Sequence record: NC_041878.1
Reading direction: 5' to 3' (one strand)
Length of the DNA: 64,000 bases
Of this stretch, positions 8,322 to 63,933 are shown piece by piece (the stretch's first letter is position 1; each line of letters begins with the position of its first letter). The position numbers and the translations under genes are program-made. The notes beneath the pieces are model-generated. The model ran no database searches, was not told the origin of the DNA, and was given only the letters and a program-made list of their open reading frames with translations.

Positions 8322-10046
8322 ATGAATAAAACCAAAAATGTTCTACAAGTGGTTGTCAATTTTGAAACTGCTGAATCAGTACAAGAGCTTAAAAATCTAA
8401 TCCAATCTAAAGTTGGTGATGTTGATATTGTTCGTTACTCAGTTAATCCAACCAACGTAGTTCTTTATGTTCTTGCTGAACCGTCAGCCAATCTACATAC
8501 TATTCAGGTAGAAGATACAGGTAAAACTTACAGTACTATCAATGTAGTCGAATCTATTGTAGAAGACGGTACTAAAGAATATACAGGTACTGTTCAAGAG
8601 GCATTTGCTGAAGTTCAAACTTCTGAACCAAAACCTGCCAACGTTATCATCTTTGAACACGATCCTAAGCTCGTTGCATTACTTAATAAAGAATATAAAC
8701 TATCAAACGTTAGTGTTTATGATGGTTTGGTTTCTATCAGTACTGAAGATGAGATTGTGCTAATTGAACCACAAGTTAATGTGACTATTGATTATAGTAC
8801 TTATAATGAGAGTACTGGTACAGTCAAACTTGTTCAAACCAAAGATGAAGAATCTTCTATAATTGAAGCTTTTAACAATCGTGTTGCAGAAATTCAAGAA
8901 GAAGAATTGTCTAGTCGTGATTTTTCTGAATTAGTAAGTGCAATTGACAATATTGATAATGACCGATTATCATTAACCGAACAGTTTAAGGATAGTATTT
9001 TTGGTCCAGGTATTGCTAAAGCAGAAGACTATGCACGTATGAGTACCGAACGCAATACTATTAATCTAATGTCTGACATTATGAATACGTTTAATGCTAT
9101 TGAAAACGATTTACCTTACAAACTACCAGTTGAAGCACTTGCTAAGATGGATGAACATGAACGCAACGTGCATGAAATGAAAAACATTCTTCTAAATGTA
9201 CAAGGTTTAGGTGAAGAAATTTCTATGGCAGCAGCATTGAAAGAAGACGTGTCTCATACAACAGTAAAAGAAGTAGCTGGTGCGTCACAATCTGGATTTG
9301 TTGATGAAGATGATGATGATATAGAATCTCTATCAGCTTATAGTATTGGTGATACCGTAGTTGAAACAGTAACTCTAAAAGTTGCACTAATTAGCTTTAA
9401 TGCTTTTGATGAGTATGCTGCAAATCACAATATTGTTGGTTGGGATCTATTCACACCAACTACACTACTAATCAAGTACATGGAAGAAGGTGTAACTTCT
9501 GAAGAAAAAATTAAGAAATTTCATGAGATGATGGATAGTCTTGATACTGGTTGGGTACAGAAAGTTTCAGATGAAACTAAATTCTTATCAGAATTCAAGC
9601 AAGTACTAGACCGTGATGTAACACAAGAGTTCTTAGCTCGTGTTAAGAAACACAATGTCTTTGTTCGTGAAAATCTAGCGAAAATTCGTTCTGCACTTCT
9701 AGATATGGAAAAAGACTACGAAGAACTAAAAGATGAAGTCAATCTAACCATCGATTGGGAAAATCTAACCGCATTTGCATCCAAAAAGGAACGTATTGAG
9801 CATCGTGTAAGAGGTGTTCAAATGGTGTTCTCTGGCTCTAATCGTCCAGATGCAAACGTTGTAAGAGTTGATTCTGAATATGAAGGGAAAGATTTTTACA
9901 TTCCATTTAGTTTGATTACTGATGAAATTCGTGAAAAATATGTACTAGATAACGAACTTCTATACATTGAAAATGTTCCAGACTTCGCATTCTATGAAGT
10001 ACCTGTAAATGGTCATGTCATGATTATTGAAAAAACTGACCTATAA
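8322..10046 (+). CDS. large acidic hypothetical protein
   Basis: ~574 aa ORF. Confidence 0.8.
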   Translation: MNKTKNVLQVVVNFETAESVQELKNLIQSKVGDVDIVRYSVNPTNVVLYVLAEPSANLHTIQVEDTGKTYSTINVVESIVEDGTKEYTGTVQEAFAEVQTSEPKPANVIIFEHDPKLVALLNKEYKLSNVSVYDGLVSISTEDEIVLIEPQVNVTIDYSTYNESTGTVKLVQTKDEESSIIEAFNNRVAEIQEEELSSRDFSELVSAIDNIDNDRLSLTEQFKDSIFGPGIAKAEDYARMSTERNTINLMSDIMNTFNAIENDLPYKLPVEALAKMDEHERNVHEMKNILLNVQGLGEEISMAAALKEDVSHTTVKEVAGASQSGFVDEDDDDIESLSAYSIGDTVVETVTLKVALISFNAFDEYAANHNIVGWDLFTPTTLLIKYMEEGVTSEEKIKKFHEMMDSLDTGWVQKVSDETKFLSEFKQVLDRDVTQEFLARVKKHNVFVRENLAKIRSALLDMEKDYEELKDEVNLTIDWENLTAFASKKERIEHRVRGVQMVFSGSNRPDANVVRVDSEYEGKDFYIPFSLITDEIREKYVLDNELLYIENVPDFAFYEVPVNGHVMIIEKTDL

Positions 10047-10057
10047 TGTCTCCATAT

Positions 10058-10082
10058 ACCAGCCTAGTGCTGGTATTTTTTT
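10058..10082 (+). terminator. intrinsic terminator
   Basis: TACCAGC-ctagt-GCTGGTA TTTTTT. Confidence 0.8.
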
Positions 10083-10094
10083 AAGTAAGATTTA

Positions 10095-10123
10095 TGAAAC
10101 GTACTGAAAAAACATGGTATAAT
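10095..10123 (+). promoter_or_regulatory. class-B promoter (TGAAAC-17-TATAAT)
   Basis: TGAAAC gtactgaaaaaacatgg TATAAT. Confidence 0.75.
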
Positions 10124-10129
10124 GTCAGT

Positions 10130-10622
10130 ACAAGAATTATTAGATACAACTCTGATTGACAAGGATAGTCCTTGATGAGTAAAGAACCTGAACCTATCGA
10201 AAACGTAGATGGCAGATGAGTAGTTCAATCAGTACGATGTGCAAAAGAAACCCGTTAGAGTACTAGCAATCATACAAACGCGATGTAAGTCTACGAATCA
10301 CGGCAATGCGGCACAATAAAGGAATACACTAAGCATATCAAGTATTCCCTAGATAGACATATAAGGTCACTTACCAATACGCTAAGGGAGCCAGAAATGG
10401 CACAGTACTAATTTGGTCGAATAGATCAGTACTGAGTGTGGGAATGTTTAAATCCACGACCGTTGCATATGACTGTGATAGAGAGATTACCGAGCAACCC
10501 GCTTTCGCTCTCAGAAATTGTACAATGAAGTTGTATCTAAAATTCAGAGAAATTCACAATTCGACAGATTCCGACGACTATCATCGTCAGAAAAAATTCG
10601 TACACACTTGTGTACTTTTTTT
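10130..10622 (+). ncRNA. large structured RNA, ROOL-like
   Basis: Own promoter and terminator; no credible ORF; 12-bp helix 10140-10151/10529-10540; short motifs resembling ROOL as recalled. Confidence 0.55.
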
Positions 10623-10784
10623 ATGTCTTTATTCCCCTGCGGGGGGATGAAAATGTCCTCAACAAATCTCGTCAGTATAAATTGTGTTAAACATATAAAA
10701 TGTGAATTGAGTTAAGTACGAACAACGTGAGTACTAACGAAAATTCTTTGACATTCGAAGAATGGCAAATGAAAAGGAATAGAA

Positions 10785-11024
10785 ATGATCACTGCAATAT
10801 GTGAAATGTCAGATCAGGCTTGTGGTATTGAAGCAGTACGGATTATTGAAAATACACCTGAATCCATTGCGAGTTTTGAAGAAGAAATGGATGAAATGAT
10901 GTGTATGTTTGGTTATCAATTGTATTTCTATAATTCGATAATACCAGATACCAATAGTAATGAATCCATTGTTTATCAGTGGATGCGAGATAATGAACAA
11001 TATGAAATTGATGTGGATGTGTAA
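10785..11024 (+). CDS. hypothetical protein
   Basis: Co-oriented ORF with SD. Confidence 0.75.
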   Translation: MITAICEMSDQACGIEAVRIIENTPESIASFEEEMDEMMCMFGYQLYFYNSIIPDTNSNESIVYQWMRDNEQYEIDVDV

Positions 11025-20790: not shown

Positions 20791-20880
20791 GGTGAGTTGG
20801 GGGAGTGGTTTAACCCAGCACCCTGCTAAGGTGTCGGCCTCGCAAGAGGCCCGTGGGTTCAAATCCCACACTCACCGCCA
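20791..20880 (+). tRNA. tRNA-Ser(GCT)
   Basis: Cloverleaf, loop CTGCTAA, long variable arm, GTTCAAATC, CCA. Confidence 0.95.
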
Positions 20881-31893: not shown

Positions 31894-32302
31894 ATATAAG
31901 TGTTATGTACTTCTACGTGAAGACCTTGAGATGCCTATTGGGAAATTCTCTGCACAGGTTGGTCATGGTTTAGACCAAGTTTGGGGTCAGTACAATACGT
32001 ACAAAGAACGTAGCCGTAAAGAAGATAATGAAGACCTAATTATGCCTGTCGCTAACTTTGAAGGTTGGCATAAAGAAGGTCGTCGTAAGATTATTCTTCG
32101 TATCAAAGATGAAGATCAAATGAATAAGGTGAAAGCCAAAATTCAGGAACAGATCGACGGTGAACAGTACCATCCTGGTTATTTTGTTCATGACATTTTT
32201 GATTACGGTTTCAACTTCTTCAACGGTCTAACACAAACTGGTTTGATTATCTATCCGAACAAAGAAGAAATCAAAGCAGTAAAAAGGTTGCGTTGTTGGT
32301 AA
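31874..32302 (+). CDS. peptidyl-tRNA hydrolase, Pth2 type
   Basis: YVLLREDLEMPIGKFSAQVGHG, RKIILR, DYG...T. Confidence 0.8.
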   Translation: MTKPVLEYKCYVLLREDLEMPIGKFSAQVGHGLDQVWGQYNTYKERSRKEDNEDLIMPVANFEGWHKEGRRKIILRIKDEDQMNKVKAKIQEQIDGEQYHPGYFVHDIFDYGFNFFNGLTQTGLIIYPNKEEIKAVKRLRCW

Positions 32303-32308
32303 AATAAA

Positions 32309-32337
32309 TGAAACGGAACTAAAAATTGTGGTATAAT
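32309..32337 (+). promoter_or_regulatory. class-B promoter
   Basis: TGAAAC-17-TATAAT (TGTGG extended -10) before tRNA-Leu. Confidence 0.8.
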
Positions 32338-32356
32338 ATAGATAAATAAGACAAAC

Positions 32357-32442
32357 GGGGATGTGGCGAAATTGGTAGCACGCATGAGTTTTAGGTACTC
32401 ACGCCTTCGGGCGTGTCGGTTCGAGTCCGACCATCCCCACCA
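32357..32442 (+). tRNA. tRNA-Leu(TAG)
   Basis: TGAGT-TTTAGGT-ACTCA, long variable arm, CCA. Confidence 0.95.
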
Positions 32443-32488
32443 ATTAAAGTTTTTATTTTGGAGTCTTATAACACGTCTTAAATCTTTT

Positions 32489-32517
32489 TTGACACTAAAC
32501 GCTATAAATGTTATAGT
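32489..32517 (+). promoter_or_regulatory. sigma70-type promoter
   Basis: TTGACA-17-TATAGT. Confidence 0.75.
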
Positions 32518-32574
32518 ATGAGTGTTAAGCTTTCAAGCTGCTTAATGCAGCTTTTTTTATTTCTGGAGAATAAG

Positions 32575-32934
32575 ATGAATAATACAAACGTTGGTTGGTT
32601 TATCTTCTTTTGGATTGCATTCACTGTTGTTAACATCAAGATTAGTATGTTGGATGTTCGTGAAGAAGTAGTACAGCAATATACTAAGAAAGAAACTGAA
32701 GCCAAACGTCAAGACGAACCGATGTATATTGCAGTACTTAATAAAATCAAAGATGAATCCTGTAAAGGAACAACTGATAAAGAGAACAACACTTTCTATG
32801 TTTGTGCTGATGGTTCCAAAGTTAGCATGATACATTGGACTCGCGGCACTGATCGCAAAGGTGTTGTTACTCGTGAGTATGATCCAAATGGTAAATTAAT
32901 TCTAATCTACGGACACCCTGACGATGTTTACTAA
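32575..32934 (+). CDS. membrane-anchored hypothetical protein
   Basis: SD GGAG; N-terminal TM. Confidence 0.7.
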   Translation: MNNTNVGWFIFFWIAFTVVNIKISMLDVREEVVQQYTKKETEAKRQDEPMYIAVLNKIKDESCKGTTDKENNTFYVCADGSKVSMIHWTRGTDRKGVVTREYDPNGKLILIYGHPDDVY

Positions 32935-33157
32935 AATTGAAAACGCTGAAGTACTAATTAAAACCGCTGGTGGTTATAAAGTACTTCCTGTGTACTTCCG
33001 AAACAGCAATGAATATTTGTATGCAAAAAATGGTCAAATGTTCATCGCCCTCCTTAATAGCTCTGTAACGAGTAATGCAAAAATGACTTGGCAGGAGATT
33101 AATATTCCTGTACAATACGAAAAAGGTAATATGGTGCAATGCAACACTACATCCTAA
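32924..33157 (+). CDS. hypothetical protein
   Basis: Co-oriented ORF. Confidence 0.7.
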   Translation: MFTKIENAEVLIKTAGGYKVLPVYFRNSNEYLYAKNGQMFIALLNSSVTSNAKMTWQEINIPVQYEKGNMVQCNTTS

Positions 33158-63857: not shown

Positions 63858-63933
63858 CGGGATGTAGCTCAGTTGATAGAGTGCGTCGTTTGGGGCGATG
63901 AAGCCGCTGGTTTGAGTCCAGCCATCCCGACCA
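63858..63933 (+). tRNA. tRNA-Pro(TGG), second copy
   Basis: CGTCG-TTTGGGG-CGATG; CCA. Confidence 0.9.

Follow-up and report, generated by a model that had tools for sequence, protein, structure and literature searches.

A 64,000-nucleotide stretch of DNA (sequence record NC_041878.1), referred to here as the window, was found to carry a large structured RNA in a gap between two annotated genes. The window corresponds to positions 248001 to 312000 of the genome of Pectobacterium phage vB_PcaM_CBB (KU574722, genus Mimasvirus), a 378-kb Rak2-like jumbo myovirus referred to here as CBB. The RNA measures approximately 0.5 kb up to its terminator, or approximately 0.57 kb with a conserved 3' module included, and lies on the plus strand behind its own sigma70-like promoter. 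It belongs to an uncatalogued RNA family of Enterobacterales mobile elements, with three to five dispersed copies per Rak2-like phage and one per bacterial island, and its standing as a new family of large structured RNAs in enterobacterial mobile elements is well supported. Approximately 15 helices and one pseudoknot have strong covariation support, the fold has been selected on the plus strand, and there is no encoded protein. The RNA has moved together with its promoter, as a single module, between unrelated mobile elements. The original prediction, made from the letters of the window, of a stand-alone structured RNA in an enterobacterial phage was correct in this respect.

Conserved fold of the RNA

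The plus strand of the RNA folds more stably than any of its shuffled versions (z = -3.7, 0 of 100 as stable); the minus strand also folds well (z = -2.9). A global RNAalifold analysis of the unsegmented MAFFT alignment was too noisy, and the RNA was therefore aligned domain by domain, with pairs counted per domain. In the MAFFT alignment of the 5' domain (alignment A1; 35 sequences, helices P1, P1a, P2, P3, P4, and P5), 86.5% of positions assigned to helices were paired, with a covariation score of 0.367 against 0.141 for shuffles and at most 0.095 for slid controls. Realigning this domain to the model (alignment A3; 57 distinct copies, including those of islands and of phage RaK2) raised pairing to 93.7%, with double substitutions in 30 of the 34 pairs and a covariation score of 0.498 (0.150 for shuffles), and none of 500 shuffles reached any of five measures; A3 is fitted to the model and thus biased towards it, and the independent A1 result agrees. 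Slid controls for the 5' domain were 29 to 45% paired.

For the core domain (alignment A2; 42 sequences), the pseudoknot (PK), P11, and P12 were 100% paired, with two, four, and four covarying pairs, respectively, while P13 was 90 to 92% paired; the covariation score was 0.440, compared with 0.185 after shuffling. Our own count on a concatenated alignment added P6, in which all seven pairs covary, P7, the inner part of P9, and P14. Among the 2,970 cells of this alignment, 268 were G-U and 69 were A-C, which places the RNA on the plus strand and rules out an RNA of the minus strand. The strands between helices include several that are invariant (GAUGAG.AGUU, ACCCGUUAG, CACGGCAAUGCGGC, GAUAGACAUAU, AAGGGAG, CGACCGUUG, and GAAAC.G..CAACCCGC), and several hairpins are capped by GNRA and UNCG-type tetraloops. 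The positions of all helices are given in Table 1.

Parts of the fold are specific to individual lineages. The long-range helix given in the original prediction, together with its GAATT/AATTC extension, is present in the window as P0, a perfect 12-bp helix (10140-10151/10529-10540) continued by GAATT (10134-10138) and AATTC (10541-10545) across one bulged A. The helix does not characterize the family at large, as it is conserved only in orthologs of the window paralog, namely, GAP32 (in a shifted register), fHe-Yen9, and BF-type genomes; in the other four lineages P0 is absent and a 5' hairpin caps the 5' end instead. A search for a helix between the 5' leader and the module in the lineage of the 94-kb paralog returned only weak, inconsistent duplexes, with the 5' hairpin in its place. 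In a divergent copy at 107.7 kb of a 366-kb contig (L078/G004), the 5' leader forms a 12-bp pairing with the strand immediately 5' of motif 1, another lineage-specific closure of the RNA ends. The site of a module with an A/U-rich stem also differs: it lies in the loop of P13 in the window and 94-kb lineages and at P8 in the other three, and bacterial copies have it at both sites. The P5 module may be short, with the loop CAUAGUUUGUA, or long, at approximately 40 nucleotides (A1 columns 125 to 166), and islands have a third form. Short and long types are swapped between paralogs within a genome or lineage (L020 versus L021; the copies of fHe-Yen9-04), which suggests gene conversion of this single module.

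The 3' region is conserved in a different manner. Hairpin H9, whose 3' strand is motif 1, was 64% paired without double changes in alignment A2, and its sequence is strongly conserved; thus, H9 is more aptly regarded as a sequence motif. RaK2 has GAAGA/UCUUC at H9, where others have GACGA/UCGUC. Conservation extends for approximately 80 nucleotides beyond the terminator, to approximately position 10700, in every lineage, in islands, and in RaK2. Motifs 1 and 2 change jointly by clade, reading CGUCAG in CBB-like phages, CGUCAA in 121Q and islands, and CUUCAA in RaK2. The 3' module may be part of the same RNA by way of read-through, may be a second element, or may be read as DNA.

Table 1. Features of the RNA locus in the window and positions of the five copies in the CBB genome (window coordinates, except for the five copies)
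Feature	Position	Strand	Description
Terminator of upstream gene CBB_349	10056-10082	+	8-bp stem and T run; 5' limit of RNA unit
Promoter	10094-10123	+	ATGAAA/TGAAAC -35-like element 10094-10099, 18-nt spacer, TG 10115-10116, TATAAT 10118-10123
Noncoding RNA body	10130-10622	+	Predicted start to terminator, approximately 493 nt; both ends predicted
P0, 5' arm	10134-10151	+	Long-range helix; partner 10529-10545
P1	10152-10159/10225-10232	+	99% paired, 8/8 pairs covarying; encloses P1a and P2 (unit 10152-10232)
P1a hairpin	10160-10164/10170-10174	+	94% paired, 5/5 pairs covarying
P2 hairpin	10188-10198/10208-10215	+	94-97% paired; conserved loop GAAAAnGUA; conserved strand GAUGAGUAGUU 3' of P2
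P3	10238-10242/10311-10315	+	100% paired; encloses P4 and P5 (unit 10238-10315)
P4	10252-10255/10300-10303	+	100% paired
P5 exchangeable module	10256-10299	+	Long type in window copy
P6 hairpin	10321-10327/10342-10348	+	91% paired, 7/7 pairs covarying; followed by invariant strand CUnGAUAGACAUAU (unit 10321-10401)
P7	10362-10365/10370-10373	+	93% paired; followed by invariant AAGGGAG
P8 hairpin	10390-10393/10398-10401	+	GAAA loop
P9 bipartite hairpin	10403-10415/10422-10434	+	Inner P9 100% paired; conserved UGUAUAG-type loop
P10	10438-10442/10453-10457	+	83-87% paired
PK (pseudoknot)	10462-10466/10494-10498	+	Crosses P11 and P12 (core 10462-10558)
P11	10474-10478/10554-10558	+	100% paired
P12	10481-10485/10502-10506	+	100% paired
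P13	10509-10512/10547-10550	+	Closes A/U-hairpin module 10513-10546, source of P0 3' arm
H9 hairpin	10573-10590	+	3' strand is motif 1 (CAUCGUCAG; CGUCAG 10585-10590); terminator follows motif 1 in three lineages
Intrinsic terminator	10600-10622	+	Hairpin 10600-10615, 6-bp stem, then T7
Conserved 3' module	10628-10677	+	P14 and motif 2
P14 hairpin	10628-10637/10642-10651	+	UGCG loop; invariant 3' strand GGGGGGAUGAAA
Motif 2	10660-10677	+	Conserved; within CAACAAAUCUCGUCAGUA
CBB copy 1	32301-32989	+	
CBB copy 2	94229-94889	+	
CBB copy 3	174345-175130	+	Flanked by minus-strand genes (endonuclease VII, CBB_249)
CBB copy 4	258047-258784	+	Window copy
CBB copy 5	336275-336948	+	

Transcription unit and coding capacity

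The gap that holds the RNA (10047 to 10784, 738 nucleotides) is 100% identical to KU574722 and has no GenBank annotation between the end of CBB_349 at 10046 and the start of CBB_350 at 10785. As CBB_349 has its own terminator, the RNA unit is insulated on its 5' side. The promoter and the terminal hairpin with its U tract, both recognized in the original prediction, are in place, the promoter scoring 10 of 12 with an extended -10 element (TGnTATAAT). Transcription probably starts near position 10130, and the probable main 3' end of the window copy is the intrinsic terminator. Three of the five lineages, as well as some island copies, have a terminator at the same place; the remaining ones lack it. 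The promoter architecture, TGAAAC-N16-17-TGnTATAAT, precedes all five CBB paralogs and 37 copies from IMG/VR, and it precedes island copies too. It matches the "TGAAACG" promoter class of CBB, which has been described as "divergent RpoD-like" and is found mostly ahead of DNA synthesis genes (PMC5259590).

The prediction that no open reading frame (ORF) led by a Shine-Dalgarno sequence is present was borne out, in that no ORF is conserved; a 70-amino-acid GTG frame in CBB is missing from orthologs. Protein coding was rejected as neither orthologs nor paralogs conserve the larger ORFs, and a short AUG-led frame after the G-run was rejected as a 1-nucleotide indel shifts the frame between orthologs while the nucleotides are conserved. 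Two or three "hypothetical proteins" are drawn across the RNA in GenBank records of fHe-Yen9-04 (g347 and g348), Kaldavass, SHEFM2K, the SD-series Salmonella phages, and others. As the region covaries and no frame in it is conserved, these protein calls are probably spurious. Four metatranscriptome or RNA libraries yielded contigs covering the gap, and in one of these libraries the depth peaks there. The flanking genes are covered too, and these contigs were therefore rejected as proof of expression. Judged from its anatomy, the unit is likely to be transcribed.

Copies in jumbo phages

All five copies in CBB are on the plus strand and occupy gaps of 660 to 790 nucleotides (Table 1). The copy at 174 kb lies between minus-strand genes, which argues that the RNA is its own transcription unit and not a leader. 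A covariance model of the 5' domain, R1, was used to count copies per genome. Five copies each were found in GAP32, fHe-Yen9-04, XbC2, and the 366-kb contig, four in 121Q, and three in RaK2, while PA5oct and the more distant jumbo phages Atu_ph07 and XacN1 had none. Two pattern scans of IMG/VR each returned approximately 45 to 50 loci, nearly all in Rak2-like genomes of approximately 350 kb or in fragments of them; six loci from the first scan that matched the DNA patterns had no profile match and were discarded as chance. Orthologs cluster by position, indicating that the paralogs predate the phage genera. XbC2 (OP292654) and XaC1 (OR258281), both Mimasvirus phages, each carry five copies that are 87% identical to those of CBB; their reported host, Xanthomonas vesicatoria, would not have been expected for this clade.

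Across the 356 kb of unique sequence in the CBB genome, the copies are spread evenly, at intervals of 52 to 84 kb (P = 0.005 for the minimum gap and P = 0.002 for the variance, in a test devised after the pattern was seen). The three copies of RaK2 leave a gap of 184 kb. GC and AT skew, examined as a mark of replication origins, showed no inflection at any CBB copy.

Copies in bacterial islands

When 185,579 species genomes were scanned with patterns, 18 loci were returned, nine of which were full-length homologs; the other nine had no profile match and were discarded as chance. The homologs are located in the chromosome of Serratia fonticola GTA-SR07, in Serratia sp. 2723, Citrobacter amalonaticus P55, Enterobacter chinensis, Silvania hatchlandensis, and Enterobacteriaceae RIT714, in two enterobacterial metagenome-assembled genomes, and on a 2.8-kb contig (DPOH01000171.1; L132) binned as Clostridium sp. 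UBA10317. The copy on this contig is of the enterobacterial type, and the contig is probably misbinned. A single copy was present in each of the five genomes searched whole. The RNA was identified in 2 of 5,426 complete Escherichia coli genomes, in none of 150 other sampled genomes of the order, in none of 72,556 plasmids, and in no temperate phage isolate of the phage collection.

Island copies retain the promoter along with the RNA. The usual order is an integrase gene on the same strand, the RNA directly downstream, and a convergent gene for a CI/LexA-like repressor. A large serine recombinase is encoded at four loci and a 423- to 432-amino-acid ORF, possibly an integrase, at two. Approximately 10 metagenome contigs repeat the order of integrase, RNA, and repressor, with integrases that are only 40% identical to one another. 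The exception is the S. fonticola locus (L230:14062-17440), where a serine recombinase precedes two ParB_N/RepB-like genes, after which comes the RNA on the opposite strand; this copy adjoins a duplicated host rof gene. In one type of island (L133, L120, L125, L127, and L132), a perfect palindrome of approximately 30 bp (CCCTATAAATATC GGTA GATATTTATAGGG) separates the integrase stop codon from the RNA promoter and could be an operator or an integrase terminator.

The island of C. amalonaticus P55 (L231:5846-15200, G006) spans 9.4 kb from ppdD/hofB to nadC and contains a large serine recombinase, the RNA, an uncharacterized 165-amino-acid ORF, a CI-like S24 repressor, three further unknown ORFs, a small resolvase, and the type IV restriction enzyme GmrSD; it could be a phage satellite or a defense island. 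The E. coli island, of approximately 11 kb, adjoins ffs and has genes for DUF4326, DUF488, and dual-OB proteins. Its DUF4326 gene (L228:17035-17628) has a relative of 40% identity at positions 87027 to 87281 of CBB, and in a comparison of island proteins with those of CBB no other protein was shared. Annotation of the unknown island genes with Pfam and PHROG identified no replication or RNA-binding function.

Searches for known RNA families

At gathering scores, the 4,227 families of Rfam 15 matched only tRNAs in the 64-kb window. Positions 9900 to 10900, searched at an E value of up to 10, gave nothing above chance and no ROOL, and the four other paralogs and four island copies, searched at an E value of up to 0.5, matched no family and returned chance-level hits only. 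The best of these chance matches (E = 0.087 to 0.39) were to snoRNA and small RNA models and fell far below gathering scores. The original prediction had likened the RNA to ROOL and proposed an Rfam scan for ROOL, GOLLD, and OLE; none of these families matched, and the host setting and tRNA adjacency also differ from those of ROOL. The sequence does contain the segments that it quoted as ROOL-like, although a resemblance to ROOL could not be confirmed for them. Its fallback, that an RNA that is not ROOL would be a new large RNA, is supported by the covariation and by the absence of an Rfam family. Covariance models likewise gave no match to GOLLD, OLE, HEARO, raiA, group I or II introns, RNase P, or tmRNA. 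The tRNA and tmRNA models matched tRNA genes only, the nearest at position 20791, approximately 10 kb from the RNA. From there to position 63930 the window holds 23 tRNA genes identified by Rfam, all on the plus strand; several are up to 122 nucleotides long, and this unusual length suggests inserts. Full-text literature searches covering papers on CBB, RaK2, fEgEco12, and other jumbo phages, as well as on large RNAs, found no description of the RNA.

Possible function of the RNA

On balance, we favor the explanation that the RNA is the product of a stand-alone gene and that the folded molecule itself acts on a partner supplied by the host. A host-supplied partner is proposed because the RNA and its promoter are essentially the sole element common to the lytic jumbo phages and the islands. 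The folded RNA would serve as a scaffold, ligand, or decoy for this partner in the host cell. The paralogs most likely share one job, as their invariant loops and junctions are the same and their helices differ mainly by compensating changes; they may be functionally equivalent, with the extra phage copies serving dosage or timing. Several observations weigh against this explanation. The partner and the activity of the RNA are hypothetical, and the contigs from RNA libraries may derive from carry-over of DNA. The copies in CBB are spaced more evenly than expected by chance (P of approximately 0.005), which a diffusible RNA would not require. The approximately 80 conserved nucleotides past the terminator in three lineages are unaccounted for by a simple gene running from promoter to terminator, and the joint change of motifs 1 and 2 by clade hints at a coevolving reader, which would be unexpected for a fixed host partner.

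The same spacing would suit a cis-acting replication origin primed by RNA, the main competing explanation, which we regard as unlikely. Such an origin would operate in the manner of the R-loops at oriF and oriG of T4 or of the preprimer RNA II of ColE1. The RNA-DNA hybrid of the transcript would be extended by the T4-type replisome that CBB encodes (PMC5259590), with a persistent hybrid near the 3' end, around the U tract and a C4/G6 hairpin, formed or positioned by the folded transcript, and the islands would be satellites or defense islands that copy the module for amplification by an infecting Rak2-like phage. Copy number scales with size, from one in islands of 9 to 11 kb to three to five in genomes of 350 kb; the promoter and the G-run are approximately 0.5 kb apart, and the invariant strand that follows the terminator (3' strand of P14) is purine rich. 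TGAAACG promoters are concentrated before DNA synthesis genes in CBB, and islands and CBB share no initiator protein, which fits an origin that needs none. On the other hand, there is no skew inflection at the copies, RaK2 manages with three copies and its 184-kb gap, the invariant loops and pseudoknotted core exceed the needs of a primer, and a strong terminator stands ahead of the G-run in three lineages. Absence from plasmids further indicates that the RNA is not an autonomous origin that depends on the host only, and an origin of the ColE1 type, with a plasmid replication region and a member of the RNA I family, was rejected on the same absence and on the lack of a match to Rfam RNAI. The more specific proposal, a self-contained RNA-primed module that fires only with the T4-type replisome of a jumbo phage, that would provide Rak2-like phages with three to five evenly spaced origins, and of which small defense islands captured a copy for amplification or as a decoy, is likewise unlikely. 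An RNA read in cis could instead be a regulatory leader, the nascent transcript modifying polymerase (processive antitermination, as with HK022 put) or sensing a signal and so controlling read-through of the terminator. A promoter, the RNA, a terminator, the conserved module, and genes on the same strand follow one another at four of the five CBB copies, and H9 and motif 2 are alternative pairings for one 5' strand. We consider a leader improbable, however, as the 174-kb copy is followed by minus-strand genes, the island RNA points at the 3' end of the convergent repressor gene (the S. fonticola copy being oriented oppositely), two lineages have no terminator, and the downstream genes are different at each copy. 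Known antitermination RNAs such as HK022 put are also five to eight times smaller.

Alternatively, the partner of the RNA might be encoded by the phage and essential to Rak2-like phages, making the island copy an interfering decoy or sensor. Islands do bear antiphage cargo such as GmrSD, the E. coli island has its DUF4326, DUF488, and dual-OB genes, and motifs 1 and 2 covary by clade as if read by a coevolving factor. This partner is itself hypothetical, as is contact between the island hosts and Rak2-like phages, and island copies keep the whole fold by compensating changes, as would any working copy; we therefore give this possibility little weight. Still less is to be said for the locus not being an RNA at all but a dispersed DNA repeat, such as a site of protein binding or recombination, or a gene for a small protein. 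The outer part of P14 and H9 behave more as conserved sequence than as helices, and AUG-led frames of 10 to 22 codons, read off the alignments, follow the G-run in most copies. Such an explanation is very improbable, since covariation is seen at more than 60 base pairs, only the plus strand tolerates G-U pairs, and neither the short frame, displaced by its 1-nucleotide indel, nor the larger ORFs are conserved between copies. Membership in ROOL or another of the known large RNA families named above has almost nothing in its favor, as the resemblance is confined to a size of approximately 0.5 to 0.6 kb and carriage by phages, and no plausible Rfam 15 model reaches even an E value of 0.39.

Significance and comparison with known systems

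Large, intricately folded RNAs are rare in bacteria and phages, and each new class, such as OLE, GOLLD, ROOL, raiA, and HEARO, has opened new biology or revealed a new architecture. The RNA described here shows covariation of unusual strength and has a pseudoknotted core. Two features distinguish it: the presence of several evenly spaced copies in a jumbo phage genome and its sharing with otherwise unrelated small, integrase-bearing islands. As it is carried by cultured, tractable phages of E. coli, Klebsiella, Pectobacterium, Erwinia, Yersinia, and Serratia, its function is directly testable. Any of the models, whether a host-targeting RNA, an RNA-defined origin, or a decoy between phage and island, would be new if true; were it an origin, it would be the first to be defined by a conserved, pseudoknotted RNA fold of 0.5 kb and to be common to a virus and its parasites.

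Among known systems, the preprimer RNA II of ColE1 and the R-loop origins oriF and oriG of T4 resemble the CBB RNA in having a promoter, a folded transcript of approximately 0.5 kb, and an end near a G-run, with several dispersed copies in CBB. However, there is no homology, Rfam RNAI is unmatched on either strand, and the family is absent from plasmids; the CBB RNA also has a terminator before the G-run and far greater conservation of sequence and structure. HK022 put and other antitermination RNAs share the arrangement of a promoter, a structured RNA, and a terminator ahead of same-strand genes, but differ in that one CBB copy precedes genes of the opposite strand and the island copies face a convergent repressor gene. 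In PA5oct, a jumbo phage related to the Rak2 group, ncRNA001 to ncRNA004 are likewise ORF-free, promoter-driven RNAs of several hundred nucleotides, two of them highly expressed (Lood et al. 2020, PMC7318152). No homology to them was detected, as R1 found no candidates in the whole PA5oct genome and an nhmmer search of the 16 kb containing ncRNA001 and ncRNA002, run with the full-length profile, returned no hits.

The closest likeness is to the large ornate RNAs. ROOL (Weinberg et al. 2017, PMC5737381) is also an RNA of approximately 0.5 to 0.6 kb with multiple helices and a pseudoknot, of unknown function and with phage or prophage-like carriers, and it assembles into a homo-oligomeric RNA cage (cryo-electron microscopy preprint, 10.1101/2024.12.08.627333). 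Its typical carriers are Firmicutes or Fusobacteria together with their phages, and tRNA genes are frequent neighbors (PMC5737381), whereas the CBB RNA has no covariance model match to ROOL, is found in Enterobacterales hosts, is not adjacent to tRNA genes, and is present at three to five copies per jumbo phage. GOLLD is similarly a large ornate RNA of phages and prophages that forms its own transcription unit, but it too has no Rfam match here, and the CBB RNA is smaller, has other hosts, and is not tied to tRNA genes. The CBB RNA is thus an enterobacterial counterpart in kind of ROOL and GOLLD and not a relative of either.

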